64,000 nt of DNA, from IMG/VR virus record IMGVR_UViG_3300050120_000230, positions 62,001 through 126,000 of that record, one strand, 5' to 3'. The notes beneath the pieces were generated by a model, which had not been told where the DNA came from, searched no databases, and saw nothing but the letters and a program-made list of their open reading frames with translations. A program made the position numbers and the translations under genes. This document shows positions 5,224 through 49,754 of this stretch, piece by piece; position 1 is the first letter of the stretch; every line of letters begins with the position of its first letter.

Positions 5224-5259
5224 GATAAATACCTACGGTGACGATATATTTAGGCAAGA

Positions 5260-25023: not shown

Positions 25024-25123
25024 AACAAGGCCCGTCTTGCTAATTTAATATGGTTTACGAGAATGGTTTACGGCGGCCTAAGTCCCCTGTCAACCCACCT
25101 CCTAGCTCGCATAAATACCCGTC

Positions 25124-25522
25124 ATGGGTCGTCAATCTATCGTCTTGCTGAGCGTGCAATCCTACGAAGTCATTCATGTGGGTGAACCCGTTCGAGTTGA
25201 TAATTGGTATTCAGACCCGGAACATCTTCACACAATCGCTGTGGTCGCCAGTCATTTTCGCGGCAGAGTGAGTGTAGAGGCGTCGATTAAAGTAAAGCCG
25301 ACAGAGTCGGATTGGTTTCCTGTTCCGTTGAACGATCAATACTACGTTGACTATCCACATCTAGGGTATGGACATGAAACCTCAACTCTTGGTTTCAGTT
25401 TTCCCGGTCGGTATGTTTGGCTTCGCGCCAAGATTGACAGATCGTTGGTGATCCCACTCGACGCAGGCGAACTAATGGTCGCCGCCTGTGGTTTCATTGA
25501 TCGCATTTTGCTTAACATTTGA
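25124..25522 (+). CDS. late protein, probably virion-associated
   Basis: TAAATA at 25112-25117; all-beta pattern; heads the structural cluster. Confidence 0.65.
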   Translation: MGRQSIVLLSVQSYEVIHVGEPVRVDNWYSDPEHLHTIAVVASHFRGRVSVEASIKVKPTESDWFPVPLNDQYYVDYPHLGYGHETSTLGFSFPGRYVWLRAKIDRSLVIPLDAGELMVAACGFIDRILLNI

Positions 25523-27505: not shown

Positions 27506-27520
27506 TCAAAGGCATTTGCA

Positions 27521-31393: not shown

Positions 31394-31405
31394 GAAAGCA
31401 ATTTT

Positions 31406-33364: not shown

Positions 33365-33472
33365 CACTATACCACAACAAACCCTATAGGCGGATAAATA
33401 ACTCCACTGCTGTGGCGAGGACATTAAGCCTGTCTGACCCGCACATTCTCAAATCCTATAGGAGAATACTTA

Positions 33473-36400
33473 ATGGCTAATATCAAGAACTTCGGTATCG
33501 TTGGTGTTGGCGCCGGGGTCCAGTTTGGTAAGGGTGGCGCGCAGCTTATCCAAACCACTGGAACCTTTGCTGCGAAGAATGCTGCGGGCAATGCTTTTGT
33601 CCGTTTCCAGATCGCAGATGGCGCCAGCGACGGTGATGCTGTTACGTTCAATCAGCTTACGAACGCCGTAAGCTCGATTGGCAACACCACCACTGCCATC
33701 CAAACCGAACTCGACGCTGTCGAAGCCGGTGCTGGTCTGGGCACCGATGGCTCCTACGTGGCGCCGGTCGGCTCGAACTACCTCGCAAATGCAACGACTC
33801 TGAAGGCAGCGGACGCGCTGCTCGACGCAGCCATTTTTGCGGAAGCCACCACGCGCGCTGCTGCTGACTCGGCTCTGTCGAACGCAATCGCCAACGCGGC
33901 TGCTTCTACGGGCGGCATTCAAGCTGAACTCGACCAAGTCGAAAACTCGGTTGGTCTGGGCACCGATGGCACGCTGACCCTCGCGGCCGGTAACTACCTC
34001 GGTTCCGCAACCGATCTGGTCAATGCAATCGAAACCCTCGACGGCGTCCTCGGCGACACCGCCGCCATCGCTGCTGAAGCGAACTCCACTGCGACACAAG
34101 CGTCCTCGGACGTTGCGAACGCACTGGGTGAAATCACGCAGAACACCACTGACATCGCGAACGTCTCCACTCGTGTTGACGTTCTGGAAGCAAACGAAAC
34201 CTCGGTCACTGGCCTACTGACCGGTCTCCGTACCGATGTTGATTCCAACTCGGCCATTCTCGCTGGTGAAATCACCCGCGCCGAAGCCGCTGAAGGCAAC
34301 CTCAGCAACTCGATCACCACCGAAGTTTCACGCGCCACGGCAGCCGAAGGCGTTCTCACCAACGCAGTCGTCACCGAAACCTCGCGTGCAACTGATGCTG
34401 AAGGTGTCCTGACCACCGCAGTCGTGACCGAAACGTCCCGCGCCACGGCAGCCGAAGGCGTTCTCACCAACGCAGTCGTCACCGAAACCTCGCGTGCAAC
34501 GTCCGCTGAACTGGCTCTGGGCAACTCCGTTGCCGCTGCCAACGCTGCAATCGCCGCCGAAGTCGTCCGTGCAACTGGCGCTGAAGCGGCTCTCGATGGT
34601 CGTCTGACCACCGTTGAAACCGACTACATCAACAAGGACGGCACCGTCGCAATGACCGGCGCCCTCGACATGGGCAACAACGTTATTCATAACGTTTCGA
34701 CCCCGGTTGATGACAACGACGCAGCGAACAAGGCTTTCGTCACCGGCCTCATCGCTGGTATCGGCAACGCCTTCAACTACAAGGGCACTGTCGCACCGGG
34801 CGTCGATGCTGGTAACGCAACTGTTCTGGCTTCCACGCCCGCAGTTGGTGATTACTACAAGGCCACGAGCGACGGTTACCTGATCGGCGCCGACGATGGT
34901 TCGGTTGCTTTCCACGTTTTCCACAACGATGGTGTTGTTCGCAACACTGACGGCGGCTGGGATACGATTGGTCACACCGACTCGACCGTTGCTGGAACGT
35001 CTGGCGAAATCACCGTCACGGGTACTGTTGACACCGGCTACGTGGTTGGTATCGATGCGACCTATACGGCCGCTCGCCATCAAGAAGTGACGGACGAAGC
35101 TAACGCTCGCGCCGCCGCTGACGCCACCCTCACTGCCGCCATCGCTGGCGCTAATGCGGCTGTCGCAACTGAAACCACCCGTGCCATGCAGGCCGAATCG
35201 GACCTGACCAACTCGGTCGTCTCCGAAACGTCCCGTGCAACTACTGCTGAAGGTGTTCTCACCAACGCAGTCGTGACCGAAACCTCGCGTGCAACCGCTG
35301 CTGAAGGTGTTCTCACGAACGCCGTCGTCACGGAAACCTCGCGTGCAACCGCTGCTGAAGCTCTGATCGCAAACTCCGTTTCGACGGAAACCGCTCGCGC
35401 TGAAGGCATTGAAGCCGGTCTCCGCACCGACGTTGACGCAGCTAACGCCGCGATCATCGCCGAAGTGACCCGCGCTGAAGGTATCGAAGCCGGTCTCCGC
35501 ACCGACGTTGACGCCGCAACCGCAGCAGTTGGAACGGAAACGGCTCGCGCCGAAGCCGCCGAAGCCGCACTGGCCAACTCTATTGCTTCCACCAACTCCA
35601 ACGTCTCGACCCTGTCGGGCCGCGTGGATGTTCTGGAAGCCGCTGAAGAGCACGCCGTTTCGGACGAAGCCAACGCTCGTATCGCCGCCGACAACCTCAT
35701 CAACGCCAACGTCGCTGCTGTCGCTTCGAATGTCGCTAACGCGCAATCGGAAATCGACTCCATCGAAACCGGTGCTGGTCTGGATGCAAACGGTCACTAC
35801 GTCGCCAACACTGGTGCTCACTACATTGCGACTGCAACGAGCCTCTTCGATGCAGACAACATGCTGGACAACGCTGTCGCCGCACTGGCAACGGAACTGG
35901 CCACCCTGTCGCAAGACACCATCAAGACTGAAGACGGCCTGAACTCGGTTCACGTCGCTGACGGCCTCATCACGACGAAGTTGGACGTTGCTGGAACCGC
36001 AACCGTGGTCTCGACCATGGTCGCAACCGCCAACACCAACACGGCTCTCGCACTGGACTTCAGCGCGGCAGACGAAGTCAAGCTGGCAGCTTCCGGTACT
36101 TCGGCCGACGTTGATCTTCGCCTCACCGCGCAAGGTTCTGGCCACGTCATCATCGGTGAAACCGGTGTTGGTGTGATCCAAGCTGACGACGGCTACGACA
36201 TGACCATCGCAGGCGGCACGGGTGCAAACCTGAACCTCCAAGGCACCTTGGTCAACGTCCAAGACGGCAGCGGCACCAACGTCGCGGTCTTCGCTGGCGT
36301 TGCTGGTGCAACTGCATGGGCCACCGTCGCGAACGGCAACACCGCTGTCACCTTCGGTGCGGCTGGTGCAGCTTCCAACCTCGATCTCGTCTTCGCACCC

Positions 36401-36835
36401 AAGGGTGGCGGCGTCGTCAATATGTCTTCGGCTCGCGTCATCAACGTCGCGAACGCCACGGCATCGACGGACGCAGTCAACAAGGGTCAACTCGATGCAG
36501 CCCTCTCGACCGCTTCGGTCGGCGTGGTCAAGACTGTCGTCGCCACTCTGCCCGCCACTTCGGGCTCGGTGACCCTCGGCACGATCACGGGCACCGTCCT
36601 GCGCGTCCGCGTTCTGGTCAGTAACACCTACGACGCTGGTTCCACCATCGTTGTCGGTAACTCGACTACCGCGAACGATCTGGCCGCTGACACGGACATC
36701 GATGAAGGCACCGCTGGCATCTATGTCATCGAAACCGCGAAGGACTACTCCGCAATCACCGTCACCGCGACCGTCACGAATACGACTGGTCTGAACGGCG
36801 CTGCGAAAGTCATCGTCGAATATCTGGCTTCGTAA
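33473..36835 (+). CDS. coiled-coil fibre protein
   Basis: 18-aa ETSRATAAEGVLTNAVVT repeats, DA(V/A)N-type neck motifs, TAAATA at 33395-33400, AGGAG RBS. Confidence 0.85.
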   Translation: MANIKNFGIVGVGAGVQFGKGGAQLIQTTGTFAAKNAAGNAFVRFQIADGASDGDAVTFNQLTNAVSSIGNTTTAIQTELDAVEAGAGLGTDGSYVAPVGSNYLANATTLKAADALLDAAIFAEATTRAAADSALSNAIANAAASTGGIQAELDQVENSVGLGTDGTLTLAAGNYLGSATDLVNAIETLDGVLGDTAAIAAEANSTATQASSDVANALGEITQNTTDIANVSTRVDVLEANETSVTGLLTGLRTDVDSNSAILAGEITRAEAAEGNLSNSITTEVSRATAAEGVLTNAVVTETSRATDAEGVLTTAVVTETSRATAAEGVLTNAVVTETSRATSAELALGNSVAAANAAIAAEVVRATGAEAALDGRLTTVETDYINKDGTVAMTGALDMGNNVIHNVSTPVDDNDAANKAFVTGLIAGIGNAFNYKGTVAPGVDAGNATVLASTPAVGDYYKATSDGYLIGADDGSVAFHVFHNDGVVRNTDGGWDTIGHTDSTVAGTSGEITVTGTVDTGYVVGIDATYTAARHQEVTDEANARAAADATLTAAIAGANAAVATETTRAMQAESDLTNSVVSETSRATTAEGVLTNAVVTETSRATAAEGVLTNAVVTETSRATAAEALIANSVSTETARAEGIEAGLRTDVDAANAAIIAEVTRAEGIEAGLRTDVDAATAAVGTETARAEAAEAALANSIASTNSNVSTLSGRVDVLEAAEEHAVSDEANARIAADNLINANVAAVASNVANAQSEIDSIETGAGLDANGHYVANTGAHYIATATSLFDADNMLDNAVAALATELATLSQDTIKTEDGLNSVHVADGLITTKLDVAGTATVVSTMVATANTNTALALDFSAADEVKLAASGTSADVDLRLTAQGSGHVIIGETGVGVIQADDGYDMTIAGGTGANLNLQGTLVNVQDGSGTNVAVFAGVAGATAWATVANGNTAVTFGAAGAASNLDLVFAPKGGGVVNMSSARVINVANATASTDAVNKGQLDAALSTASVGVVKTVVATLPATSGSVTLGTITGTVLRVRVLVSNTYDAGSTIVVGNSTTANDLAADTDIDEGTAGIYVIETAKDYSAITVTATVTNTTGLNGAAKVIVEYLAS
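34316..35365 (+). repeat. two blocks of coding 54-bp tandem repeats
   Basis: GAAACCTCGCGTGCAAC...GAAGGTGTTCTCACCAACGCAGTCGT units at about 34316-34506 and 35216-35365. Confidence 0.8.
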
Positions 36836-36928: not shown

Positions 36929-37068
36929 TGGAACCGCGTGCCGGATTTGCACCGGCTATTTCTCACTCTCGGCCAGCTTGCTGGCTTCCGCTATATGACT
37001 ACGATTACCTCGTCCGAAGTCTCAAATACTTTGGAGTCAACGACTTTCGCATCACGGAGTGACGCGGA
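36929..37068 (-). ncRNA. tRNA-like RNA (acceptor stem, T-arm, CCA) with non-tRNA interior
   Basis: 5' TCCGCGT pairs with 3' ACGCGGT-T-CCA; T-arm GCCGG-TGCAAAT-CCGGC; TTGACA-N17-CATGGT promoter upstream. Confidence 0.65.
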
Positions 37069-37135
37069 TTGAACACCCGAAGGCGAAACATCACCATGCC
37101 AATCAACGACGATCTTGTCAACGCATAAATAATGG

Positions 37136-37600
37136 ATGAGCATTCGCCAATTCATGAATATCATCGTCGAATCCTATGAGGATGAAGACGATGAGTATCA
37201 GGCTCCCACGCCAGAAGAGTATACGCTCAAGGCCGGGACGACTGTTTATCATGGCACGAATGGACGGTTTGATGAACGACACGGTCTATCGAGCCCATCG
37301 TGGGTGACCGATTCCATCGAAACCGCCAAATATTTCGCTACGTGGAAGCCAGATGAAGGCAAAGCTCGTCTCACTACGTGGAAGATAAACGGTGATTTGC
37401 GTCTGGCCATCATGACTACGGAATATCTCGACTACTGCCACGAAGACCTTTGCTACGAAGACCCCGAAGACATCCTCGCCCATCTCCGTCGAGAAGGCTT
37501 TGATGGATGGATCATCCCAGACAATTACGGAACTCGGCAGGCTGACATTCTTCTGAATGACGCCAATATGCTGGACTATGTGAAGAGCACACGCCTATGA
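37136..37600 (+). CDS. ADP-ribosyltransferase-like late protein
   Basis: VYHGT, SWVTDSIETAKYFA, GFDGWI motifs; TAAATA at 37126-37131. Confidence 0.55.
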   Translation: MSIRQFMNIIVESYEDEDDEYQAPTPEEYTLKAGTTVYHGTNGRFDERHGLSSPSWVTDSIETAKYFATWKPDEGKARLTTWKINGDLRLAIMTTEYLDYCHEDLCYEDPEDILAHLRREGFDGWIIPDNYGTRQADILLNDANMLDYVKSTRL

Positions 37601-38232
37601 ACCGCCCAGCCAATTTTTCCCACTACATCAAGATCAAAACAACGGAGCCTCTAGACAAGGCAACCATGAAGACGTGGTTCGATTGTGCGAAAGAGTTTCT
37701 TCCGGGTGGCGTTATCGCGTCGGTGCAAACTACGGACGACCAAGGGTCTCTGCGTAGCGCCACCATGGTTCATCGTGAAGTGGGTGGCGCCCACGAATAT
37801 ATCATCCCGCTGTCTCGCGATCTGCTCGACAAGGAAGTGCAACCGGTCATTGACGCATTGGCGTCAGAACTTCCCGATCTGGACTTCGATCTTGAGGTGT
37901 CGTCGGCACAAGCTGGTCTCTTGACCGAACCGGAAGTCATCGAAGTCGCGGACAACAAATACACTGACCTCTGCACTGCATGGGCGCGTAAACAGCACGA
38001 AACATGGCTGCATGATCGTACCGACGCGGGCTGGCGCTATGGCCCCAGCATGAGCGTGAAAAATAAAACTCACCCGCTCCTGCGGCCGTGGCATGATCTC
38101 CCAGATCAATTTCGAAAAATTGATACGTCTCAGCCGCAAGCATTGCTCGATCTTTTGAACGATCAGGGCTACGCGGTGATCGGCAAGGCCGAACTCGAAG
38201 GCATCATGCGTCTGCTCAAAGGCGGCGTCTGA
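37597..38232 (+). CDS. protein with C-terminal RyR repeat domain
   Basis: ARKQHETW....DAGWRYG.....KTHPLLRPWHDLP. Confidence 0.8.
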   Translation: MNRPANFSHYIKIKTTEPLDKATMKTWFDCAKEFLPGGVIASVQTTDDQGSLRSATMVHREVGGAHEYIIPLSRDLLDKEVQPVIDALASELPDLDFDLEVSSAQAGLLTEPEVIEVADNKYTDLCTAWARKQHETWLHDRTDAGWRYGPSMSVKNKTHPLLRPWHDLPDQFRKIDTSQPQALLDLLNDQGYAVIGKAELEGIMRLLKGGV

Positions 38233-38291
38233 GATTCTTATTGCACAGCTACCCTTGTTCCACCAAAGTGGGATGGTTAATTGGGGGCATA

Positions 38292-38501
38292 ATGGAAGTC
38301 GCGCTGGTAATTTGGTTGGGAGGTGGGTTTCTCCTGTGGGTCACCTATCGGTTGACGCACGGGGATGCTTCGGCTGATGTTCACGCCCCGCCACAGAAAA
38401 CCTTGCTCGGCGCCATCATGTGGCCGTTCTATCTGGGCAATTTCTTGCTCCACAAAGCCGGTCAGTTAGTCGGCCTGCGACCTAAAACCGACGACGAATG
38501 A
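38292..38501 (+). CDS. small membrane protein
   Basis: two hydrophobic segments, GAIMWPFY. Confidence 0.5.
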   Translation: MEVALVIWLGGGFLLWVTYRLTHGDASADVHAPPQKTLLGAIMWPFYLGNFLLHKAGQLVGLRPKTDDE

Positions 38502-38538
38502 TGTTGATCTGGTAAACCATACGAGATACGTTTCTGGT

Positions 38539-39894
38539 ATGGATGCTGTCTCGATCATTAATAGCCTCGCCGCCACAACCAAGCGCACCGAAAAAGAACA
38601 AATCCTCATGGGTGCGTTCATGGGTGGGCACCGTGAGTTTTTCATCGCGTCCCAGATGGCCTACGACATTCTGGTGACGTTCGGCGTCAAGAAGGTCGCC
38701 GAGATCGATGATGACGACGATAGTCCCGGCGAGTTCACGTTCGCCGATTTCCTCAGTCTGGCGGGGAAGCTCCGTCGCCGGGAACTCACCGGCCACGCTG
38801 CCCGCGACGCCATCCATGATGCGGCCGAACGCTGCCACATTCCCACTTGGAACACGTTCTATCGTCGGGTCCTTCTGAAGGATTTCCGCTGCGGTGTGGA
38901 CACTTCGACCATCAATCGGGTCCTGAAGAAACTATCGGACACCGAACCGGAAGCCCGGCAATTGATGATCCCGGTTTTCGACTGCCAGTTGGCACACGAC
39001 GGCGCCAAACCAGAACATCAGAAAAAGGTTTCCGGCACCAAGATGCTGGATATCAAACTCGATGGTGTCCGGCTGTTGACGATCCTCGATAAGGAAGAGG
39101 GCACGGTCACCCAATACACTCGCAACGGAAAGGTGAATGCCAACTTCACCGAAATTCGTGAAGGACTGGAAAGTCTGCTCACGACGTTGCCGGGGTCTAT
39201 CGTGCTCGATGGCGAAGTGATGTCGCTGAATTTCCAAGATTTGATGCGACAAGTGAACCGCCGAGAAGGCGTGGACACCAGTCAATCTCGTTTGGCAGTC
39301 TTTGATATCATCCCACTCAAGGATTTCCGTGCGGGTATCTGCAACATCCCCCAGTCCATGAGGCAGCACATTCTCGCCGATCTTGAACAGAGCGGCGATC
39401 TGAAGCAGCACACCAACGGGCTTGTCTACGTCATCCCGAAGGTGACCGTTGATTTGAACACGCCGGAAGGTCAACTAAGTTTCAAGGAGTTCAACAAGCA
39501 AGCCATAGCCGCCGGTTACGAGGGCATCATGGTCAAGGACCCTACCGCTCCCTATGAACTGAAACGCTCGTTCGCATGGTTGAAGATCAAGCCGTTCATT
39601 GAAGTCAGCTTGACCATCGTGGGCTACGAAGAAGGTTCGGGCAAATACGCCGGAATGCTCGGGGCTTGGGTCATGAAGGGCGAAGACGATGGAGTCGAGA
39701 TCGAAACCAACGTTGGCGGTGGGCTCAGCGATGCAGAACGCGTGGAATATTGGGAGAAGCGCGACAAACTGATCGGAATGATCGGCGAAGTTCGAGCCGA
39801 CGCCAAAACGCTGGAAGACGGCGGGACGGTTTATTCGCTTCGTTTCCCTCGCTGGAAGGGCTTCCGAGGCACCGTCCCCGGCGAAAAACTCTGA
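38539..39894 (+). CDS. ATP-dependent DNA ligase
   Basis: KLDGVR, LDGEV, FDII, EGIMVK, WLKIK, SLRFPR. Confidence 0.95.
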   Translation: MDAVSIINSLAATTKRTEKEQILMGAFMGGHREFFIASQMAYDILVTFGVKKVAEIDDDDDSPGEFTFADFLSLAGKLRRRELTGHAARDAIHDAAERCHIPTWNTFYRRVLLKDFRCGVDTSTINRVLKKLSDTEPEARQLMIPVFDCQLAHDGAKPEHQKKVSGTKMLDIKLDGVRLLTILDKEEGTVTQYTRNGKVNANFTEIREGLESLLTTLPGSIVLDGEVMSLNFQDLMRQVNRREGVDTSQSRLAVFDIIPLKDFRAGICNIPQSMRQHILADLEQSGDLKQHTNGLVYVIPKVTVDLNTPEGQLSFKEFNKQAIAAGYEGIMVKDPTAPYELKRSFAWLKIKPFIEVSLTIVGYEEGSGKYAGMLGAWVMKGEDDGVEIETNVGGGLSDAERVEYWEKRDKLIGMIGEVRADAKTLEDGGTVYSLRFPRWKGFRGTVPGEKL

Positions 39895-40286
39895 TGCTGG
39901 ATAGCTACACCGTTCCTATGGAGCGACATGGTCGAGCAAAGTTCAACGCTCGACATTCGCCCGACCGGTGTGAGTTCTACAACAGCGACGAACTCCGGCG
40001 GGCAGGCCATATCCAGTGGTCTCCCGCAAATCTTCGCGACAAAGAAATGCTCGGTGTGTTTCACACGATCCGAACGATAGACGAAATGTATGCTCTCGTC
40101 TCTCAACCGATCACGAGAGAAGTTCTGGAAGAGTCCATGGAGGCCGCGACAACGCTACTCCGCATGAACATGCACTTCGACGCATGGACCAGTATGGAAG
40201 TGTCTGACGGCGTTCAAAATAGGCTGGGATTTTTCTTTCGGCGCCGTGAAGACGCACTCATGTTTAAGATGGTGTGGCCGTCCTAA
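39894..40286 (+). CDS. hypothetical protein of the FKxxW family
   Basis: TGATG coupling to the ligase; ends FFFRRREDALMFKMVWPS. Confidence 0.65.
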   Translation: MLDSYTVPMERHGRAKFNARHSPDRCEFYNSDELRRAGHIQWSPANLRDKEMLGVFHTIRTIDEMYALVSQPITREVLEESMEAATTLLRMNMHFDAWTSMEVSDGVQNRLGFFFRRREDALMFKMVWPS

Positions 40287-40293
40287 ATACAGG

Positions 40294-40932
40294 ATGCGCG
40301 TTGACGATATTTTCCCGCCCGAAGTCATCGACGAAGATATTCGGAAATGGATGGGTGGCGCTCTGGCGGCCGGTGCTCTCGCCGCCGCCCCTGTGGGCAT
40401 GAAAAACGTCCACGATACCAACGCTCAAGCGTCCATCGCCCAAGACATCGCAGTGCTGGCACAGACCATGTGGGGCGAGGCCCGGAACCATGGCACGGTG
40501 GGCATGTTGGCCATCGGCAACGTCGTCAAAAACCGCGCCGAGTCAGATCGCGGCCTGACATTTGGTCACGGAATTAGGGGTGTCGCGCTGAAGCACAAGC
40601 AATTTTCTTGCTGGAACCCGAGCGATCCGAACCGCGACAAAATCGAAGAAATGAAAAAACTGGATCAAGATATCAAGAGCCATGTCTCTCCTGATCCGAA
40701 AGTTCCGTTCGATCAGTGGTTCAAGGCGTTTCAGACAACACCAGAATTCGGTGAGTTTAAGGCGTGGCGTGAAGCTTATTTCTTGGCTCAGAAAATCATG
40801 TTGGACCAAGTTCCAGACCCCACAAAAGGGGCTTTCTTCTATCATACGACCTCCGTTCACCCTCGTTGGTCTATCGGTGCTGAACCGATCAGTCAGGTCG
40901 CAAATCACGTTTTTTATCAACGAGTGCACTAA
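40294..40932 (+). CDS. SleB/CwlJ-like cell wall hydrolase
   Basis: LAQTMWGEARN, V.NR, QFSCWN, DPTKGAFFYH, NHVFY; TAAATA at 40284-40289. Confidence 0.9.
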   Translation: MRVDDIFPPEVIDEDIRKWMGGALAAGALAAAPVGMKNVHDTNAQASIAQDIAVLAQTMWGEARNHGTVGMLAIGNVVKNRAESDRGLTFGHGIRGVALKHKQFSCWNPSDPNRDKIEEMKKLDQDIKSHVSPDPKVPFDQWFKAFQTTPEFGEFKAWREAYFLAQKIMLDQVPDPTKGAFFYHTTSVHPRWSIGAEPISQVANHVFYQRVH

Positions 40933-41036
40933 TCGTCGCGCGACAATTGAATCATTTTGGTTGACGAAACCGTTTCGGTATATATTTTACGCTCCATAGT
41001 TCGCGGGTAACACCGCATACATTGGAGCAGAGCCAT

Positions 41037-41597
41037 ATGTCGCCTTTCGGAATCCGCCCTGACGAACGCGTCGCCGTTTTCATCGACGGCCCCAATCTCT
41101 ATGCGGCAGCCAAACAAGCTCAGGTCGAAATCGACTACAAGAAGATGCGTGAGCACTTCGAAACGTCGTCGCAGTTCATTCGCGCCTACTACTACACCGC
41201 CATGGCCGACGACGAGGAAGAGTTCAACCCCGTCCGTCCCCTGCTCGATTTCCTCGGCTACAACGGCTTCTCGCTGGTGACCAAGCCGATGAAGCAGTTC
41301 ACCGACGAGACCGGCCGCAAGCGCAACAAGGGCAACATGGACATCGAGATCGCGGTGGACATGCTGGGTCTCGCCGACCGCCTCGACCACATCATCCTGT
41401 TCTCCGGCAACGGCGACTTCCGCCGCGTGACCGAAGCCGTGCAGGACAAGGGCGTTCGTGTCACGGCCGTTTCCACGAAGGATGGCGGCTCCACGATGAT
41501 CGCCGATGAGCTTCGCCGTCAGGTGGACAGCTTCGTCGATGTCAAGGATTTGGCCGGTATTCTCGGCCGCGCGCCGCGAGCCGTCACCCGCGACTGA
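41037..41597 (+). CDS. NYN-domain (LabA/DUF88) protein
   Basis: FIDGPNL, KGNMDIEIAVD, SGNGDF, LRRQVDSFVD. Confidence 0.9.
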   Translation: MSPFGIRPDERVAVFIDGPNLYAAAKQAQVEIDYKKMREHFETSSQFIRAYYYTAMADDEEEFNPVRPLLDFLGYNGFSLVTKPMKQFTDETGRKRNKGNMDIEIAVDMLGLADRLDHIILFSGNGDFRRVTEAVQDKGVRVTAVSTKDGGSTMIADELRRQVDSFVDVKDLAGILGRAPRAVTRD

Positions 41598-41639
41598 ACA
41601 ACCCGATTTGCACCCTGTGCCGGTGCATTTTGGAAGACT

Positions 41640-41669
41640 GGGGCGTCCTACGGGGCGCCCCTCTTTTTT
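41640..41669 (+). terminator. intrinsic terminator
   Basis: GGGGCGTCC-TACG-GGGCGCCCC followed by a T-tract. Confidence 0.85.
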
Positions 41670-41671
41670 GG

Positions 41672-41699
41672 TTGACCAAATAGTTTTCCGTGAGAAACT
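41672..41699 (+). promoter_or_regulatory. early-type promoter TTGACC-N11-CGTGA-GAAACT
   Basis: recurrent motif with identical spacing. Confidence 0.75.
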
Positions 41700-41729
41700 T
41701 CAATCAAGAGCGAAACGCGGAGGCACATC

Positions 41730-42089
41730 ATGCAAGTCCACATCAAGAAGATGAACCGGGTGATCGAAACCACCGACGACCGTGGTGGCCTCGGCAAGAC
41801 CATCGGCTTCTACGAAATGAAGTCGGAAGCTGAAGCGGTGGCAAAAGGTCGTGGCTGGTACGGCGGCGATGCTCGCCTGATCTCGACCCGCATCCTGCAA
41901 GTGGTGGAAATCGTGGACGGCTCACCGGTCGCCAAGAATTACGTGCTGGACAACACCTTCTCCGACCCGGTGGCTCTGGAAGTCGATCTGGTGCAGGACG
42001 CCCGAGACAAGCTCGAAGCCGTCCAAGCGAAGGCCAAGAGCACGTTCACGGCTGAAGAACTCGCCATGCTGAAGCTCAATTTGCCCTAA
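41730..42089 (+). CDS. hypothetical early protein
   Basis: GGAGG RBS and the conserved promoter. Confidence 0.7.
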   Translation: MQVHIKKMNRVIETTDDRGGLGKTIGFYEMKSEAEAVAKGRGWYGGDARLISTRILQVVEIVDGSPVAKNYVLDNTFSDPVALEVDLVQDARDKLEAVQAKAKSTFTAEELAMLKLNLP

Positions 42090-42147
42090 CACATATAGGA
42101 AACAGCAGTTTTCTATGCACGTTCCAGCGACGTGTATAGAAACTGGC

Positions 42148-42756
42148 TCAAATCCACGCCAATGTGGCTTCGCCCTTATAGTCGTGGTCCCAGACGAACC
42201 ACGCGAAGGCGATCATCCCAGAGTTCTTCATTTTCTCACCGTTCCGCGTCATCGATAGACGCTTGGAGAACACATAGACGCGTTTGAGCGGTGTGCTCTC
42301 GAACATTTTCTTTCGCCTGCCGCCCTCAAGAAATTGCAGCTTGCAGAGCATGGCTACCTTGCCCGTGGTGAGTAGCAGCGATTGATAGATAAACTCTTCG
42401 GCCAGTTTGAACGGAGGATTCGTGATGATGTTCGCCGGGCGCTCACGCTCGTTATAAGTTTCGATCTCATTCAGGAAGTTCTTGTCTCCCACGCCGTAGC
42501 CCCGATAGTTCAAATCGGTAGCTCTGATCTCGTGGCCATGCGCTTCGAGCACCTTGCAGATGGCGCCGTCGCCGCAAGCAGGTTCCCAGATCAATCCTTC
42601 AAAAGTTTCGTGGGCCAGTAACGCTTCTGTCGCCTCGGGAGGCGTGGGGTAGAAATCGTCATCTGGCCGCCCGGCCGAAGTGCCTACTAGGCTCTGCGCG
42701 CGCTTGAGTTTGGGATCAATAGGAGTGTCGGGGAAAAAGATAAGGGGTTCGCTCAT
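42148..42756 (-). CDS. amino (N6-adenine type) DNA methyltransferase
   Basis: DDFYPTP, WEPACGDG, IITNPPF. Confidence 0.85.
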   Translation of the reverse strand: MSEPLIFFPDTPIDPKLKRAQSLVGTSAGRPDDDFYPTPPEATEALLAHETFEGLIWEPACGDGAICKVLEAHGHEIRATDLNYRGYGVGDKNFLNEIETYNERERPANIITNPPFKLAEEFIYQSLLLTTGKVAMLCKLQFLEGGRRKKMFESTPLKRVYVFSKRLSMTRNGEKMKNSGMIAFAWFVWDHDYKGEATLAWI

Positions 42757-42967
42757 TGCGAAGGTATTTAGTACGGACTTTACTCATCCTGAGTTAGGTG
42801 AAGTCAACGACTATTTCGGTGGTTTTCCACCAATGAAGTTCTAAGGCTGCGCGTGGCACCCCTGCGACCATGAGGGCTGCTTCCGCGTTTTCCGTGGCGC
42901 TTCGAAGAGGGTTCAATAGTTCTACTTGCATCTGAGCGAATTGATGGGGGCTGACCACGCGCAACAT

Positions 42968-44509
42968 TCACTTTTTCTCCGTAATGAGTTGCTTCAGCCG
43001 TTCTTCAACTCTTTCGAGCACACTAGACCAGTTTCGTGGTTCTTCCTGATGGAAGATTTCCACAGTCGGATACCAAGGACTATCGGTGCGATCTTTCAGC
43101 CAGCGCCAGCATCCATCAAATCGTGAAAGCAACCACGTCGGTTTGCCAAGGGCTGCTGCGAGGTGAGCCGTGGACGTATCGACAGCGATCACCAGATCGA
43201 GTTGAGAGATGACCGCTGCCGTATCCAGAAAATCGAAATCCGGTTCGAGGACTTGATGTGGATAAAGTTCTGGCGGCAAGGCAGTTAGATGATCTGTTGC
43301 ACGGTCACCAAATTGTAGACTGAAAAAATCTGCATCTAGTTCCAGTAGGCCGACGAACCACATGAGTTCAATGGATCGCCGATTATCGATGAGTTTCATC
43401 TCGTGGGCGTCACGAGATTGGCCCGCCCAGACGATGCCAACTTTGAGTCGGGAACCTTTGATTTTGCGAGTTTGTATAAGTTCATCGGGCACCGTCAAAT
43501 AGGGAACGGTTGCTGGAATCGTTTCCAATATAGTGCCTAGCAACATCGGCGCGTTCAGCATCGGGCATTCGAAATCATAGTCCAGATCATCCCGACTATC
43601 GACCACCGGAACACCGAGTGCGTCGAACAAACGAAGCAATGGTGTAGGCACAAGAATTGTGAGTTCTAGACCGGCGGCCACCAACAACGGTGCGAAGCGC
43701 ACGAATTGAATGCTGTCCCCGAAACCTTGTTCATGGCAAAACAGAACACGTTTGCCGATCCCGTCTTCCAAATTGGTGAGGATTGGTTTTTGGAACTTGG
43801 CTACATCCGGCTTTGCCATGGGGCAGTCCCAGCGCCGCCCATAGAGCCGCCACCCTGTCGAATAGTCTCCGAGCTTCAGACGTAGTGTGGCTCGATTGAA
43901 ATCCATCTCTGGACTGTCTACTGGTGAATCCGCCGCAAGCGCATCGAACGCCTCCAACGCCTCGTCCTCTCGGCCGATATCGCTGAGCGTGACGGCTCGG
44001 TTCAAGCGGGTTCGAATACGACCAGCGTTGTCATCACCGTTAAGGGCCAAGGCACGGTCGTAGAGGGCCAAAGCGTTCTCATGCTGGCTCAGGCGGCGAT
44101 AGACGTTAGCGAGGTTCATAGCGGCCTCCCAGTGCGCTGGATCGGCATCCAGAGCTTGCAGGAGAGCATCGCGTGCGTCGTCGTGTCGATTTAGAGCAGT
44201 GAACACATTTGCTGCGTTGAAGCAGAGGTTGGCGTCTGCTGAAAAATCTTTCAGACCGTTCAGGGCATAGGTGAGCGCGTGATCGGCTGCCTTTGCTTCT
44301 AGGAACCCGACACAGGCATTGGAGAACCAATCCGCACGAGGTTGCACAAGACTGCTTGCCATGAGCAAAGTGTCTGCTTCGTCAAATCGCCCCAGCGCGA
44401 TGAGCGATAGGCCGGTGACGTGCATGATCTCGGCGGACTGAGCGCCCACTTGCAGAACATCGAGATGTTCGCCTGCAAAATATTTCGTCCAAACGTCTTC
44501 CGGGTTCAT
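42968..44509 (-). CDS. TPR-repeat protein fused to a GT-B (family 9-like) glycosyltransferase domain
   Basis: TPR helices, then EQGFGDSIQFVRF, KVGIVWAG, DLVIAVDTSTAHLAAALG, SPWYP. Confidence 0.85.
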   Translation of the reverse strand: MNPEDVWTKYFAGEHLDVLQVGAQSAEIMHVTGLSLIALGRFDEADTLLMASSLVQPRADWFSNACVGFLEAKAADHALTYALNGLKDFSADANLCFNAANVFTALNRHDDARDALLQALDADPAHWEAAMNLANVYRRLSQHENALALYDRALALNGDDNAGRIRTRLNRAVTLSDIGREDEALEAFDALAADSPVDSPEMDFNRATLRLKLGDYSTGWRLYGRRWDCPMAKPDVAKFQKPILTNLEDGIGKRVLFCHEQGFGDSIQFVRFAPLLVAAGLELTILVPTPLLRLFDALGVPVVDSRDDLDYDFECPMLNAPMLLGTILETIPATVPYLTVPDELIQTRKIKGSRLKVGIVWAGQSRDAHEMKLIDNRRSIELMWFVGLLELDADFFSLQFGDRATDHLTALPPELYPHQVLEPDFDFLDTAAVISQLDLVIAVDTSTAHLAAALGKPTWLLSRFDGCWRWLKDRTDSPWYPTVEIFHQEEPRNWSSVLERVEERLKQLITEKK

Positions 44510-44554
44510 CTTTCAAGTATAAACCGCCCGCCCTTCCTCACGCTAAATATATCA

Positions 44555-45604
44555 ATGCGATACCGTGAAATCATTGGCGAACATGCCCCGACCATCGCAG
44601 ATGCGACAAAGAAGAACGGCATTGATCGGAAGATCGCGAATAAGATGGTAGACCCCAAGGGGTATTTTCATCCCAAGGCGCCCATCTCTGAGCGAGATAA
44701 TCTGTCGGCGTGGTTTTCTGGTTCGAAAGTTGTTGACGAACACGGTCAACCCAAACGAATGTATCACGGTAGTAACACCGCGTTCTCGTCATTCGACCCC
44801 GATAAAGCAAATCCCAATTCACTCGTCGGGCCGGGATTTTATTTCACGTCGAGTCCAGAAGTTGCCGGAGGAACCGGTGGCGCCCAGAACGATGAAGAGC
44901 TACGAGCGAAAGCCGCCTTCAATCAGGCAGGCTACGCTTTTCAAGGCACCAAGTTTGAAATCGCCCCGCTGACACCTCGTCAAATCGAACACTTCCGCCG
45001 TATCTTCAACAGCAAGCAGGTTGAGCACGACTGGCGAAACGATATCGGCTCTCGCGAAAGCTGGCAACGAGCCGACAAAGCGTTCGATCAAGGACCCGAG
45101 GCCCTTGCAAAATGGATCGCGAACGAAGCTCCGCAGTGGGTCAAAGATCGCATGAAATTGCAACCCGTCCAAACGACTACGCCGACCGTGTATCCGGTTT
45201 ATCTTTCGATCAAGCACCCGTTCGAAATGGACCTACGCCTCAACCCGGAAGAGGCACAGGAAATGCGTCGCCATATGTGGGAAGCTTCGAAAGAGTTTTT
45301 CGAAGGCGGCGAGCATGGTGAGACATTTGAGAACGCGACCGGCGGCTATCGTGGCACGAAGCGCGATACCTACGCCGGGGATGTCTGGGAATGGATGTTG
45401 AAGCGAGTTTTCAGTAGTGATCGTGGCCGGGCTACGGCGACCCTAAAGCGCATGGGTTATGACGGTATCCATCACACCGGCGGCCGAAACATCGGCACCA
45501 TGGGCGAACACGACGTGTGGGTGGCTTTCTATCCCAATCAAATCAAGTCGGTCTTCGCCCAGAAGTTCGATGCCGACAGCCACGACATCGGAGAATCACG
45601 CTAG
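44555..45604 (+). CDS. ADP-ribosyltransferase-like late protein (polyvalent-protein ART type)
   Basis: WFSGSKVVD..G.P..MYHGS, GPGFYFT, VYPVYL, GYDGI, VAFYPNQIKS; TAAATA at 44544-44549. Confidence 0.7.
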   Translation: MRYREIIGEHAPTIADATKKNGIDRKIANKMVDPKGYFHPKAPISERDNLSAWFSGSKVVDEHGQPKRMYHGSNTAFSSFDPDKANPNSLVGPGFYFTSSPEVAGGTGGAQNDEELRAKAAFNQAGYAFQGTKFEIAPLTPRQIEHFRRIFNSKQVEHDWRNDIGSRESWQRADKAFDQGPEALAKWIANEAPQWVKDRMKLQPVQTTTPTVYPVYLSIKHPFEMDLRLNPEEAQEMRRHMWEASKEFFEGGEHGETFENATGGYRGTKRDTYAGDVWEWMLKRVFSSDRGRATATLKRMGYDGIHHTGGRNIGTMGEHDVWVAFYPNQIKSVFAQKFDADSHDIGESR

Positions 45605-45605
45605 A

Positions 45606-46079
45606 TCATTTCGGTTTCTTGAGGTTAGCAACAGCTATCGCTAAACTAGATGGGTGAAACTTGGGGACCGACAAAGTTAGCTTTGCCTTCTCATCAGCAG
45701 CAAGGAAGACATGATGACTTCCAAACAAATATTTCCCCACAGGATTGCTTCTGAAATGGCGATGCGTGGCCACTTCTAATACAACGATCTCATCGTCATA
45801 CTCGATGTAGTAAACCCTGATATCGTTGCTGTGGAGATCGGGCAGGATAGTCAGGTGCTTTAGACCATGATCCAGTCTCAAGAAATCTTTCGATGGATCG
45901 CTGTTTCCATATTGATAGATAGGAAGAGAGTTTGCGGTGGTTACGTTCTCACGCAACTCTGCTAACGCCAGTTTGATCTCGGTTTTGAAGCGAGTAAGCG
46001 ACTTGTCGATGTGGAAAGTTGTCGCGTGACGGAAACCAAGTTTCTTCTTCGCAATCGTTTCTGTAGTCTTACGCAGCAT
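45606..46079 (-). CDS. RelE/YafQ-like putative mRNA interferase
   Basis: basic protein; LKHLTILPD...RVYY...VLEVATHRHF resembles the YafQ C-terminal core. Confidence 0.5.
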   Translation of the reverse strand: MLRKTTETIAKKKLGFRHATTFHIDKSLTRFKTEIKLALAELRENVTTANSLPIYQYGNSDPSKDFLRLDHGLKHLTILPDLHSNDIRVYYIEYDDEIVVLEVATHRHFRSNPVGKYLFGSHHVFLAADEKAKLTLSVPKFHPSSLAIAVANLKKPK

Positions 46080-46119: not shown

Positions 46120-46401
46120 TCAATCGAAATACTTATCCAAAAACGCACTATATTCACTAGGCGTCATGCTAGTAACATCTGTTCCACGATCCACATCAGC
46201 AATATTTGCTTTTGCAATAAGATCAGACACTTTTCTAGAAGAGTCGAATACCAAAGTATCTAGTATGGGAGTGAAATCGATTGGAATACTAAAGACACCA
46301 AACAAGTTTGAGGTGTCCGTTTGCGGCATAGAAAATTGCAGTTGGCCATCGAAGGCTAACGTGGAGGTCAAAAAATCCATAGGTGCCTTGGTAGTCTCCA
46401 T
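46120..46401 (-). CDS. small acidic protein, putative antitoxin
   Basis: directly upstream of the RelE-like gene; AT-rich; TAAATA at 46407-46412. Confidence 0.45.
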   Translation of the reverse strand: METTKAPMDFLTSTLAFDGQLQFSMPQTDTSNLFGVFSIPIDFTPILDTLVFDSSRKVSDLIAKANIADVDRGTDVTSMTPSEYSAFLDKYFD

Positions 46402-46441
46402 CTGAGTATTTATGCGCGCTATCGGATGATGTTGTCTATAA

Positions 46442-46826: not shown

Positions 46827-47909
46827 TTAGGCCCAAGTAATCGTGATCTTCGCCGCACCTTGTGTCGGGCTACCGGTGTAGTAGACCAGAACGTCGGTGT
46901 CTTCGGCTGAATCGAACTGATAGACCGGATACACGACGTAAACGCCGAGTGTTTGCAGGTCCACTTCGGAGTTGTCCAGCAGACGGGAGTTGTTGGCCGC
47001 ATCACCAATGGTGATATCGGCGCTGCCGTCGAACACGGTCGTAACTTCGATGCTCACTTCAACGACGCGTGTGCCGTTGCCAACCGTGCCAACCAGATCA
47101 TCGCCGTCACCAACGAAGTTGCTGTTGCTGATCGGAATGGATTGGGTCAGGGCGTCGGTGCGTGCCGAAGCTTGCGTCGCGATGCACTGCCATGCAGAAC
47201 CAGTCCACAGGTAGTCAGCGAACTCACCCGTGCCAGCGTTAGCCGGATCACCGCTGGCGTCGAGGACGTGGGCGATGTCACCGACGTTCGGCACCAGAGC
47301 ATCACGAGCCGTGATGTCAGCGACGACACTGGTCTTGGAAGATTCACCGATAGCAGCGATGCTGGTGTCCAGCGTCGTGCCGATGTAGTGATAGACTTCG
47401 ATGTAAACGCTGTCCGTGGCGACGCCAACAACGCCCGAACCGATAGTGGCGGTGATGCCCGAAGGAATCGTGCCAGTGAAGTTCAGGGTGCCGGAGACGT
47501 AGTCGAAGACGTATTCTTGGCCAGTCGTATCAGGGAAGATACGAGCAGCTTTGGCGCCGTTGGGATCACCGAGCCACACGCGGACGAGATAACCCGAACC
47601 GAAGGTGGTGGGGATGAAGTTCCCCATGCCAGCGCCCCAAGTCACGTTCGCCGGAGAAGTGGTGTCCATGACCAGTGCGATACGTGCAGCGCCGTAATAC
47701 TTGTGCACGGTGGCCGTGGTCGAACTCGGCGGAATGAGAGGAATGCTCGTGGTGTCCGATTGCGTCCACACGTTCGTGGCGTAAACGGGAAGCGGCGAGG
47801 AAACGGTTTCGTTGGAACCAGACTTCGTCAGCGAAGACGCGGTCTTGGAGGTTCCGAAGATCACCTTCTTCCAGAGGAAGTCCAGTTTTTCTGTGTCAGA
47901 AATGGTCAT
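46827..47909 (-). CDS. virion structural protein (mosaic paralog of 27521 and 31406 ORFs)
   Basis: MTISD..K.DFLWKKVIFG N-terminus; VVADITARDAL and terminal beta domain. Confidence 0.75.
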   Translation of the reverse strand: MTISDTEKLDFLWKKVIFGTSKTASSLTKSGSNETVSSPLPVYATNVWTQSDTTSIPLIPPSSTTATVHKYYGAARIALVMDTTSPANVTWGAGMGNFIPTTFGSGYLVRVWLGDPNGAKAARIFPDTTGQEYVFDYVSGTLNFTGTIPSGITATIGSGVVGVATDSVYIEVYHYIGTTLDTSIAAIGESSKTSVVADITARDALVPNVGDIAHVLDASGDPANAGTGEFADYLWTGSAWQCIATQASARTDALTQSIPISNSNFVGDGDDLVGTVGNGTRVVEVSIEVTTVFDGSADITIGDAANNSRLLDNSEVDLQTLGVYVVYPVYQFDSAEDTDVLVYYTGSPTQGAAKITITWA

Positions 47910-47924
47910 TGGTCAATGCTCCCC

Positions 47925-49754
47925 TTAGTTCGTGAAGCTGAGAGCAGTGATCGACTGACCGGCATTCAAACGAATGCGGACGAGGATTTGATTGCCCGTT
48001 GCGGAGGTTGAAGAAGCGGTGCCGAAAGTCATCTGGAAGGTGCCCGAAGAACCGTTCATCACGGCGCCAGAAGCGCAACCAGCGGTCAATTCGCCAGCAC
48101 CACCGGGAACGCCAGCGCCCGCGTAGGCGACAAAGGCGTTCCACCATGCACCACCAACTGCGTTCGGCGAGACGCCGGAGTTGTCGGAGACGCCCGGCAG
48201 GCCGATCCACACACCGGCGTAGGTGCCGGTGACGGTGATCTTGAACTGCGAGAGCGCGGTGCGGTTGAAGGAGAACGTCACATACTGTGCAGCGTCTTGA
48301 CCCGAGAGGTTCGGACCAGCGGGCAGAAAGCCCGTGCTGTAGTTGGTCGTGTCGTTCTTGAGGGCGCCGCCGACGACCGTTGCATCCCAAGTGTGGATGG
48401 AAGCCGATTGGACCCAAGTGTTGGCTGCGAGGACCGGAGTGTTGCCCGTAGCTTGGCCGACGCGAACCGCGTTGCTGTTGCTCGGAGAAGAACCCAGACC
48501 AGTGACCGGGACGCTGAGTTCGTCAACGCGAGTGGTCGTGCCGTTCTTGACCAGAATGACGGAGGACGGAGAGGCAGTGCCACCCTGACCGTTGACGTTC
48601 GTGCCAGCCAGCGAAATCGTGCCCGAGTTGTGCACGTTCGAGGGGTTGACGCTGAGAGTCACCGTGGACATCGCCGTGGCCGTCGTGGTGTTTGCCGCGA
48701 TGGGGGTGGAGATACCGACGTTGGCGTAGGTGAAGGTCTGCGTCGAAAGGATCGAGTTGGTTGCACCAATCGACAACGGCGAACCGTTGAAGTAGGTTTG
48801 ACCAGCGAGGTTCGAAATCGAACCACCGACCGTCAGGGTAGCGCCCGTGTTGTAGTGCGGGACGCTCGACGAGAAGGCGACGGTGCCGTTCGAGAGTTGG
48901 GCCACAGTCGGCGACGTGATCGCCGGAGTTGCGACCAAGTTGTCACGAACGAACGTGACGAGGTTCGTAGAACCAGCGGCCGTATCGGTGATCTTGGCGT
49001 TGTTGACGCCGAGTTGCGTTGCCGCGCCAGAAACCGAGACGTTGACCGATTTCCAGAAGCCCGGAGTAGCGACCGGATAATCTGCTTGGCCGGAGATAAC
49101 GAGGCCGCCGTAGGTGCCGTTGTCTGCGATACCCGTCAGGGTGTGTGAACCAACCGAAGAGTTGTTGACCAGCAGCGAAAGCGTGCCGCTTTCACCCGGA
49201 CCCATGTTCGTGAACGAGTTCGAGCTTGCGAGTGTCGTTGATGTGATACGCGTGACGGCCGTACCGGCAGTGGTGCCGGTGCTGGCGTTGTCTTGCGCGC
49301 CGGAAGCCAAAACAGGCGAAGAACCAACCGAAGCGACGGTCAGTGCGTTTGCGTTCGGGAAGTTCGGCGGGGCGTTCGGGACGAGCTTGCCGAGGATTTC
49401 GTTGAGTTGGTCAACTGCTTCGGAAACCACGGTGCTGTTGGTCAGCGGGACCGCACCGGGGGACCAAGAACCGTCGCCGTAAGCAACGATGTCGCCAAGA
49501 ATAAGGTGGAAACCATCTGCAACGCCTGCGTTTGAGATGGAGTTGCTCAGGCTCGAATCGAGCGCGTTAAGCTGCGAAAGGGTAACAACGTCGGTATTCG
49601 CGACGGCGGCTGCCGCGCGAATAGTGGTCAACGAGATACCATCGGCACTCCGCGCCTCGACAACCGATCCATTCACCTTAAGACGAGGACCAGCCTTGCC
49701 AAGTTGAAGATCGGGGCCAACGCCCGAAAGTCCGAAGTTTTTTGTGTCTGCCAT
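47925..49754 (-). CDS. virion structural protein (mosaic paralog of 33473 and 25580 ORFs)
   Basis: MA..KNFG..GVG...Q.GK.G N-terminus; body ends ILVRIRLNAGQSITALSFTN; TAAATA at 49787-49792. Confidence 0.75.
   Translation of the reverse strand: MADTKNFGLSGVGPDLQLGKAGPRLKVNGSVVEARSADGISLTTIRAAAAVANTDVVTLSQLNALDSSLSNSISNAGVADGFHLILGDIVAYGDGSWSPGAVPLTNSTVVSEAVDQLNEILGKLVPNAPPNFPNANALTVASVGSSPVLASGAQDNASTGTTAGTAVTRITSTTLASSNSFTNMGPGESGTLSLLVNNSSVGSHTLTGIADNGTYGGLVISGQADYPVATPGFWKSVNVSVSGAATQLGVNNAKITDTAAGSTNLVTFVRDNLVATPAITSPTVAQLSNGTVAFSSSVPHYNTGATLTVGGSISNLAGQTYFNGSPLSIGATNSILSTQTFTYANVGISTPIAANTTTATAMSTVTLSVNPSNVHNSGTISLAGTNVNGQGGTASPSSVILVKNGTTTRVDELSVPVTGLGSSPSNSNAVRVGQATGNTPVLAANTWVQSASIHTWDATVVGGALKNDTTNYSTGFLPAGPNLSGQDAAQYVTFSFNRTALSQFKITVTGTYAGVWIGLPGVSDNSGVSPNAVGGAWWNAFVAYAGAGVPGGAGELTAGCASGAVMNGSSGTFQMTFGTASSTSATGNQILVRIRLNAGQSITALSFTN

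Follow-up and report, generated by a model that had tools for sequence, protein, structure and literature searches.

In a window of 64,000 nucleotides (nt), bases 62,001-126,000 of the 415,409-bp IMG/VR record IMGVR_UViG_3300050120_000230 (hereafter G000; 55% G+C), the hexamer TAAATA stands within a few nucleotides of the start codons of several phage genes, and three of these genes encode proteins that begin with a short peptide ending in Glu. Taken as a whole, these features are probably best explained by promoters of the T4 late type that abut the start codon, together with a T4-like capsid-targeting leader that packages host-takeover and counter-defence enzymes. An initial annotation had proposed such a leader for two ADP-ribosyltransferase (ART)-like proteins and a SleB-like hydrolase. 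For the two ART-fold proteins it is the best explanation, and the idea has gained a family of ~29 leader-bearing proteins, relatives that encode a prohead protease, and the presence of 11 of 14 leader-bearing proteins in virions of Agrobacterium phage Atu_ph07; for the hydrolase the case is weaker and the assignment doubtful. Packaging of the leader-bearing proteins appears well supported by comparison with relatives, and the analogy with T4 suggests that the leader is cleaved, that the proteins lie in the head rather than the tail, and that they are injected.

As far as sequence comparison places it, the window phage belongs to the Atu_ph07 / Rak2-like group of T4-superfamily megaphages, has a genome of ~570 kb and comes from soil. 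The family-B DNA polymerase shares 52% identity with its counterparts in Sinorhizobium phage Phosso and Atu_ph07 and ~44% with those in Rak2-like jumbo phages, and the window also holds tail sheath, tail tube and fibre genes and a gene for a Clp-type ATPase. A peat metagenome (DNA) is the only sequencing run found to hold the window sequence and is probably its source sample; none of the RNA runs searched contains it. Megablast of window positions 37000-45700 against GenBank phages gave no match. The relatives used here are G001, a complete, terminally redundant IMG/VR genome of 523,836 bp with a 61-67% identical DNA polymerase, which is a closer relative of G000; G005, likewise a closer relative and a complete, terminally redundant genome (IMG/VR; 578,292 bp), which encodes a 53%-identical homologue of the protein at 37136; and an NCBI contig of 569,661 bp (GCA_040384025.1, JAWVHG010000015.1) that shows synteny with the region of the finding. 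CheckV gives the G000 record a completeness of 72%, and our own gene calling by codon usage yielded 611 genes, which make up 88.6% of it.

TAAATA motifs abutting start codons

TAAATA occurs 26 times in the window against 6.3 copies expected, a roughly four-fold excess that none of 100 shuffles reached, and 140 times in the whole record, where the preceding letters are usually [CG][AC]. The distance from the motif to the next ATG that opens an open reading frame (ORF) is sharply bimodal: at 40 sites it is 4-5 nt, and the other class lies at ~20-36 nt and carries a GGAG-type Shine-Dalgarno (SD) sequence. The initial annotation had named five sites in the window with TAAATA 4-6 nt before the ATG and no SD sequence, and its reading holds in both respects: the spacers are 4, 4, 5, 6 and 5 nt (ATG at 37136, 40294, 44555, 25124 and, on the minus strand, 46401), and at abutting starts SD scores are ~0, with no space for an SD site. 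These sites, a sixth and one of the SD-bearing class are listed below by window position.

37126-37131 (+): TAAATA core, 4-nt spacer atgg, ATG at 37136; layout kept (N4/N5) in the orthologues on the 569,661-bp NCBI contig and in G005
40284-40289 (+): TAAATA core, 4-nt spacer cagg, ATG at 40294; kept in two relatives
44544-44549 (+): TAAATA core, 5-nt spacer tatca, ATG at 44555, in a 45-nt gap between divergent genes
25112-25522 (+): TAAATA at 25112-25117, 6 nt, ATG at 25124; ORF of 132 amino acids (aa) without the leader motif
46120-46412 (-): TAAATA at 46407-46412, 5 nt, ATG at 46401; 93-aa ORF without the leader motif
42148-42770 (-): sixth site, TAAATA at 42765-42770, 8 nt, ATG at 42756; 202-aa DNA methyltransferase without the leader
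56601-59543 (+): tail sheath gene, with TAAATA at 56563, 32 nt upstream, and GGAGG; leadered class, putatively the same promoter

Among our gene calls for the record, 46 genes abut TAAATA. Thirty of them have no in-frame start farther upstream, and in the other 16 the upstream extension has a negative coding score. Given these results and the SD scores, the longer GTG-started ORFs at 40294 and 44555 in a mechanical ORF list are not the genes. Spacers of the N4 class read NNGG. All abutting starts accepted as gene starts are ATG, which was the selection criterion; for each of six abutting GTG or TTG candidates, a start linked to an SD sequence lies downstream.

T4 late promoters lack a -35 element and consist of an 8-bp TATA box that precedes the transcription start by about one helical turn, and in the late promoter of phage Aeh1 a/gC replaces TA at -13/-12 (PMC2988020); the [CG][AC]TAAATA of G000 has the same shape as these promoters. 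As is characteristic of T4-type late promoters, a TATAAATA-like -10 box without a -35 element stands upstream of virion genes, and TAAATA precedes the tail sheath gene and several fibre genes at leader-like distance and with an SD sequence. Atu_ph07 encodes a gp55-like sigma factor, and its clade has gp55 homologues (PMC6102473). TAAATA would then be the core of a phage-specific promoter of the gp55 type (extended -10, no -35). Because of the T4 geometry and the spacer of 4-5 nt, transcription of the abutting genes would start at the A of the AUG or 1-2 nt before it. About one third of the TAAATA promoters in this sub-lineage would be of this kind, and the promoter-ATG geometry leads us to infer that their mRNAs are leaderless.

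The distribution of the TAAATA-N4/5-ATG pattern among relatives, with a reversed-pattern control for each, was as follows.

G000: 48 occurrences; control 0
G005: 55 occurrences; control 0
G001: 7 occurrences; control 4
Atu_ph07: 17 occurrences; control 26
Phosso: 4 occurrences; control 2

The abutting layout thus appears to be a derived trait of one sub-lineage, and it is not a feature of G001, Atu_ph07 or Phosso.

A modular leader on unrelated proteins

The three amino termini quoted in the initial annotation, those of the genes at 37136, 40294 and 44555, proved to be as it had read them. Together with the proteins that they open, they are the following.

37136-37171 (+): leader MSIRQFMNIIVE, 12 aa, ending I-V-E; kept in 7 of 9 homologues
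37136-37600 (+): 154-aa protein with a predicted ADP-ribosyltransferase fold (H-Y-E class; AF2 and Foldseek) and an invariant H39-G40-T41
40294-40335 (+): N-terminus MRVDDIFPPEVIDE, leader-like, 14 aa with I-D-E at its end; less canonical than the other two
40294-40932 (+): SleB-like cell-wall hydrolase, Hydrolase_2 (PF07486, E 3.7e-15; phrog_938 endolysin)
44555-44581 (+): leader MRYREIIGE, 9 aa, canonical, ending I-G-E; the same type at at least 8 other G000 genes
44555-45604 (+): 349-aa predicted ADP-ribosyltransferase, ART-PolyVal (PF18760, E 2.3e-18, 67.7 bits, cutoff 31.2)

These leaders belong to a family with the consensus M-R-x-x-[ED]-[IL]-[ILF]-x-E, 9-14 residues long, that opens ~25 TAAATA-abutting genes and 4 genes with ordinary or coupled starts (~29 in total). 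One group comprises MREFINLLE, MRDFINLVE, MREWINLVE and MREFMNIVNE, and a second MRYREIIGE, MRYHEIIRE, MRYWEIISE and MRMREIITE; MRAHEIMTE, MRAREIFE, MRSHEIFE, MRVLDLFE, MRDWIKLFE and others make up the remainder, and those behind ordinary or coupled starts are MRKYIDIINE, MRIHDLFEA, MRYRELVES and MKIEDLFEA. The T4 gp21 motif [LI]xE, fixed beforehand from T4 and required to end between residues 7 and 15, is found in 23 of the 46 abutting genes as compared with 57 of 565 other genes (p = 2e-10), and an MR start in 22 as compared with 37. The leaders are predicted to form an amphipathic helix, with a helical hydrophobic moment of 0.55 vs 0.31 (p = 7e-9).

Beyond residue 15 the sequences are unrelated, with 2 weak blastp pairs among 25 leader proteins and several different Pfam families represented. 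Different codons are used for the conserved R, E, I and L, and 19 abutting genes, mostly for large structural-looking proteins, have no leader peptide. On these grounds, what is under selection is a modular peptide, not an mRNA feature or a paralogue domain. Among orthologues the leader is kept while the neighbouring linker changes. A 58-aa ORF at G000:C1:222653 (+), which begins MRWKEIIANE behind GAAATA-AC-ATG, looks like a decayed promoter-leader cassette.

The "ART-like" label given earlier to two of the proteins stands, for the protein at 44555 by its PF18760 match and for that at 37136 by its fold. The AF2 model of the 37136 protein has a pLDDT of 85, with residues 1-17 (leader and acidic linker) below 50 and disordered, and its top Foldseek matches in the PDB are the diphtheria-toxin-type ART catalytic domain, MbcT, PARPs and Tpt1 (E 2e-4, TMq 0.55). 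The protein had no match in Pfam or PHROG, nor in a search against viral contigs; the model makes it a predicted member of the ART superfamily. Its acidic linker varies with indels, and two distant homologues have neither leader nor linker. On the NCBI contig, TAAATA-N4-ATG is retained before MSIRQYINIIKES. The called start of this homologue (P0004, L073:10001-10495) lies upstream of TAAATA and gives MAKYR-MSIRQYINIIKES; because of the TAAATA-N4-ATG layout the second Met is probably the true start, and gene callers that expect an SD sequence may mis-start this class of genes. A 211-aa RyR-domain protein (PF02026; 37597-38232, +) follows the ART-fold gene. Its start overlaps the stop of that gene in an ATGA, so that the two are probably co-translated, and the pair is kept on the NCBI contig.

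The protein at 44555 is, by its domain match, likewise a predicted ART superfamily member. An orthologue on IMGVR_UViG_3300009177_000052 has an identical TAAATAtatcaATG upstream and keeps MRYREIIAE, while ~35 residues directly after the leader are deleted.

The hydrolase at 40294 is less clear-cut. Its orthologues begin MRVDDLFPPEVIDE (IMGVR_UViG_3300009177_000052) and MRVEDIFPPEVIDE (NCBI contig), with synonymous changes, and both retain TAAATA-N4-ATG. Residues 19-35 (nt 40348-40398) are Gly/Ala-rich, weakly hydrophobic and reminiscent of a signal-arrest-release (SAR) segment (Kyte-Doolittle mean 1.31 for WMGGALAAGALAAAPVG), and are preceded by an acidic, leader-like stretch of 18 residues. 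The leader assignment is doubtful because this leader is the least canonical and the SAR-like segment follows it. It is quite possible that this one protein is a SAR-type endolysin, exported and then released from the membrane at lysis, whose N-terminus is merely leader-like; the composition of residues 19-35, PHROG matches to endolysins and the deviation of MRVDDIFPPEVIDE from the consensus speak for it. However, a basic rather than an acidic stretch is usual before a signal anchor, MRV-DD-IF is similar to MRVLDLFE, MRIHDLFE and T4 Alt, and both the N-terminus and the promoter layout are kept in two relatives.

Elsewhere in the genome, the leader proteins with a family match are as follows (G000 positions).

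369263: ADPrib_exo_Tox
248514: weak ART-PolyVal
249665: weak Tpt1-like
196781: GNAT
128329: NUDIX
315077: anti-CBASS Acb1 domain, 128 bits

The last of these (G000:C1:315077-316567; 496 aa, leader MKIEDLFEA) has its Acb1 domain (PF23474) at residues 14-166, lies directly downstream of the leader gene 313545 (MADIRKFMDMLSE), and may be a pre-packaged anti-CBASS enzyme. About 15 further leader proteins gave no family match, and of ten leader proteins compared with PHROGs only the Acb1-domain protein gave one.

Protease and virion association in relatives

Peptidase_S77 is encoded by G005, G001, Atu_ph07 and Phosso; a scan of genome contigs with the protease alignment gave no match. G005 has ~25 leaders, and among its 50 open abutting starts 29 carry [LI]xE and 24 begin with MR. 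The same leaders recur in G001 and Atu_ph07 (MRYNEIITE, MRYFEIISE; MRLIDLLES, MRWEQLTE and others), where the genes have TAAATA 18-35 nt upstream and an SD sequence.

Atu_ph07 links the leader to the virion. Its leader set was defined as the 14 annotated coding sequences whose start matches one fixed regular expression, and 11 of these (gp43, 53, 54, 59, 62, 63, 199, 482, 548, 561 and 672) are in the virion table obtained by electrospray-ionization tandem mass spectrometry (ESI-MS/MS), as compared with 120 of 700 others (17%; p = 1.2e-6). Throughout the gp53-gp63 run the proteins open with M[RK]W-x-Q-L-x-E, and the table includes the complete run; one member, gp53, carries a Zeta-toxin kinase domain. 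A strict NUDIX-box regular expression applied to Atu_ph07 returned nothing useful. Two of the virion proteins stand next to head genes: gp199 (NC_042013, 161865-162098; 77 aa, leader MKLTELFNPLTE) follows the portal gene, and gp205 (165229-165981), which begins MDFRQIRALLE, follows the protease gene. This placement is that of the T4 head-core genes 67/68 and 22. The authors of the Atu_ph07 paper make no comment on N-termini, paralogues or cleavage.

The 37-46 kb island that holds the three window genes is flanked by converging, paralogous fibre-like modules at 25580-36835 (+) and 46827-49754 (-), in which phrog_8578 occurs at 25580-27505 and 47925-49754 (-) and the phrog_9417 N-domain at 27521-31393 and 46827-47909 (-). 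A 1120-aa protein at 33473-36835 contains many TETSRATAAEGVLTNAVV-like repeats. Farther away, a gene at 17552-19816 (-) specifies an ATP-dependent protease / AAA+ ATPase of the Clp type (754 aa; phrog_4871, 874 bits), which may have a part in handling packaged proteins; in Atu_ph07 the Clp family has seven members, ClpS among them.

Interpretation and comparison with known systems

In the mechanism that we propose, about half of the abutting genes, including those at 37136 and 44555, would encode a 9-14-residue amphipathic leader by which the protein docks in the prohead's scaffolding core. A gp21-type (Peptidase_S77) prohead protease would remove the leader after its Glu, and the mature enzyme would remain in the head and enter the host with the DNA. 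The cargo would consist of host-takeover and counter-defence enzymes, namely several ARTs, Acb1, NUDIX and GNAT proteins, and ~15 proteins without assigned function.

Several observations weigh against this explanation. G000 itself has no protease, portal or gp55 homologue detectable with T4 gp21, T4 gp55, Pfam Peptidase_S77 and Portal_T4 as queries, and the Atu_ph07 portal, protease, gp199, gp205 and gp694 likewise found no match in the record. Nor does it hold an intact major capsid gene: T4 gp23 and Pfam Gp23 matched only two odd fragments, G000:C1:252116-252265 (-) and 396695-397093 (+), which lie in short ORFs (183 and 252 aa); the former fragment is 49% identical to T4 gp23 residues 90-142 and closer to T4 than is the capsid protein of Atu_ph07. 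With a record only 72% complete, the system is not demonstrable whole in G000. As the complete relatives have the protease, we read the head module as missing rather than absent; it evidently lies in the other 28% of the genome. The Atu_ph07 proteome came from particles purified with polyethylene glycol and included some replication proteins; head and tail were not separated and N-termini were not reported (PMC6102473). A tblastn search with 25 leader proteins found no homologues in Atu_ph07, so that only their leaders point to packaging of the three window proteins. A further point against is the SAR-like segment of the hydrolase. Finally, the DNA polymerase gene has a TAAATA ~23-32 nt before it, and a gene for an 824-aa ribonucleotide reductase (RNR)-like protein has one at 32 nt (window 5247-5252 (-) and G000:C1:234772). 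The label "late" is weakened by these two genes and may be too narrow, and both the transcription start sites and the timing given here for TAAATA genes are presumptive.

Among other explanations, the leader might tag proteins for the virion only, as parts of the tail, baseplate or whiskers, or act as a propeptide for assembly that plays no part in delivery. In favour of this, the virions of Atu_ph07 have a complex, hairy structure, the mass spectrometry that detected 131 proteins in them does not localise these, and the gp53-gp63 block falls within a cluster that the Atu_ph07 authors called structural. We nevertheless consider this unlikely, as the cargo consists of enzymes (ARTs, Acb1, NUDIX, GNAT and the Zeta-toxin kinase of Atu gp53) and not of structural folds, the leader fits both the gp21 cleavage motif and the head-core proteins of T4, and the leader-bearing 77-aa gene after the Atu_ph07 portal occupies the position of T4 genes 67/68. 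Rather improbable, in turn, is that the abutting genes do not have TAAATA as their promoter and are expressed from longer upstream transcripts by coupling, or that the motif is an RNA-processing site. Transcription starts are predicted here from geometry, the TAA within the motif at 40294 doubles as the stop codon of the preceding ORF, and 7 of the 46 abutting genes have a same-strand gene end within 15 nt. Yet 20 of the 46 have a divergently oriented neighbour and another 11 show gaps of >60 nt, and with so few near same-strand gene ends coupling is not a general answer. Moreover, the motif is orientation-specific and start-proximal, with 101 of 140 copies within 100 nt upstream of a same-strand start as compared with 38 of 140 for the complement, and it stands at promoter-like distance from the sheath and fibre genes in a clade that has gp55 homologues (PMC6102473).

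Two further proposals fare worse. An N-terminal degron or adaptor tag, by which phage Clp-type proteases would time the destruction of toxic enzymes, is very unlikely: the window has its ATP-dependent protease (17552-19816, phrog_4871) and Atu_ph07 its seven Clp-family proteins including ClpS, but such a tag would explain neither the enrichment of leader proteins in virions nor the match to the T4 gp21 motif and the N-termini of T4 head-core proteins. That the common N-terminus reflects a nucleotide-level constraint of leaderless initiation, or descent as the N-terminal domain of one paralogous family, would suit the location of 25 of the ~29 G000 leaders on abutting genes. We rejected this idea, which is largely refuted and of negligible probability: the 19 abutting genes without a leader, the varying codons, the unrelated mature parts and the same leaders behind ordinary SD-bearing mRNA leaders in G001 and Atu_ph07 all oppose it.

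Packaging by a capsid-targeting leader has its closest precedent in T4, whose Alt is a packaged and injected ART. The likeness to the T4 capsid-targeting sequence (CTS) system (IPI/II/III, Alt; gp21) comprises a ~10-residue leader ending [LI]-x-E on unrelated proteins, an ART among the cargo, TAAATA-type promoters and a gp21-type Peptidase_S77 in the clade. In the T4 record, IPII and IPIII begin MKTYQEFIAE, Alt MELITELFDE, gp22 MLKEQLIAE, gp21 MNEPQLLIE and gp24 MAKINELLRE, and gp23 is cut after L-T-E65. The T4 internal proteins are diverse defence proteins, and all that they have in common is the CTS that brings them into the scaffolding core (PMC3012670). In contrast to the handful of cargo proteins in T4, there are ~29 here and ~25 in G005; the consensus is MR-x-x-E-I-I-x-E rather than MKTYQEFIAE; the genes are scattered and do not share a single hyperplastic locus; Acb1, NUDIX and GNAT proteins are part of the cargo; the promoter is fused to the start codon in this sub-lineage; and packaging and cleavage are predictions. 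Because the protease is not in the G000 record and processing is only predicted, the leader system is better regarded as a likely variant of the T4 CTS / internal-protein system than as a demonstrated member of it.

In phiKZ-like phages cleavage occurs at S/A/G-x-E behind longer propeptides, and to our knowledge no short common N-terminal leader has been described for them. The window phage belongs by sequence to the Atu_ph07 / Rak2-like group instead, and the likeness lies in a giant head, ejected proteins and a gp21-related protease; phiKZ and SPN3US are reported to have giant heads with many ejected proteins that are matured after Glu by a T4-gp21-like prohead protease (PMC5694885, PMC10052503). 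Polyvalent proteins, known from phages and conjugative elements (Iyer et al. 2017) and injected with phage DNA, carry ART, GNAT and nucleotide-signal-degrading domains (PMC7824862). The types of effector domain are the same here, ART-PolyVal included, but they are borne by separate small leader-bearing proteins and not by one giant multidomain polypeptide. Leaderless mRNAs are known from lambda cI transcribed from PRM and are common in Actinobacteria, Deinococcus-Thermus and Caulobacter. The abutting genes resemble them in having the AUG at or a few nucleotides from the predicted 5′ end and no SD sequence; in contrast to them, a T4-late-type -10 box is set systematically 4-5 nt from the ATG in ~48 genes. 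These ~48 T4-type promoters appear to have been switched from an SD-led to a leaderless layout in one sub-lineage only, which would make them a natural switch of translation mode.

More broadly, and tentatively, this lineage of 415-578-kb soil megaphages may have made a general delivery platform of the T4 internal-protein idea, with a ~45-bp cassette of T4-late-type promoter, leaderless AUG and 9-residue capsid-targeting leader placed on 25-30 unrelated genes. The head would then be pre-loaded with ARTs, Acb1, NUDIX, GNAT and unknown enzymes that act before phage gene expression. Atu_ph07, which is cultured, has the same leaders and has published virion mass spectrometry, makes the proposal testable now. 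A leader that marks virion-packaged proteins would flag candidates for first-strike takeover and anti-defence functions by sequence, among them the ~15 unknowns of G000, and if the delivery platform is real, the leader could serve as a sequence tag for injected counter-defence effectors in uncultured giant phages.

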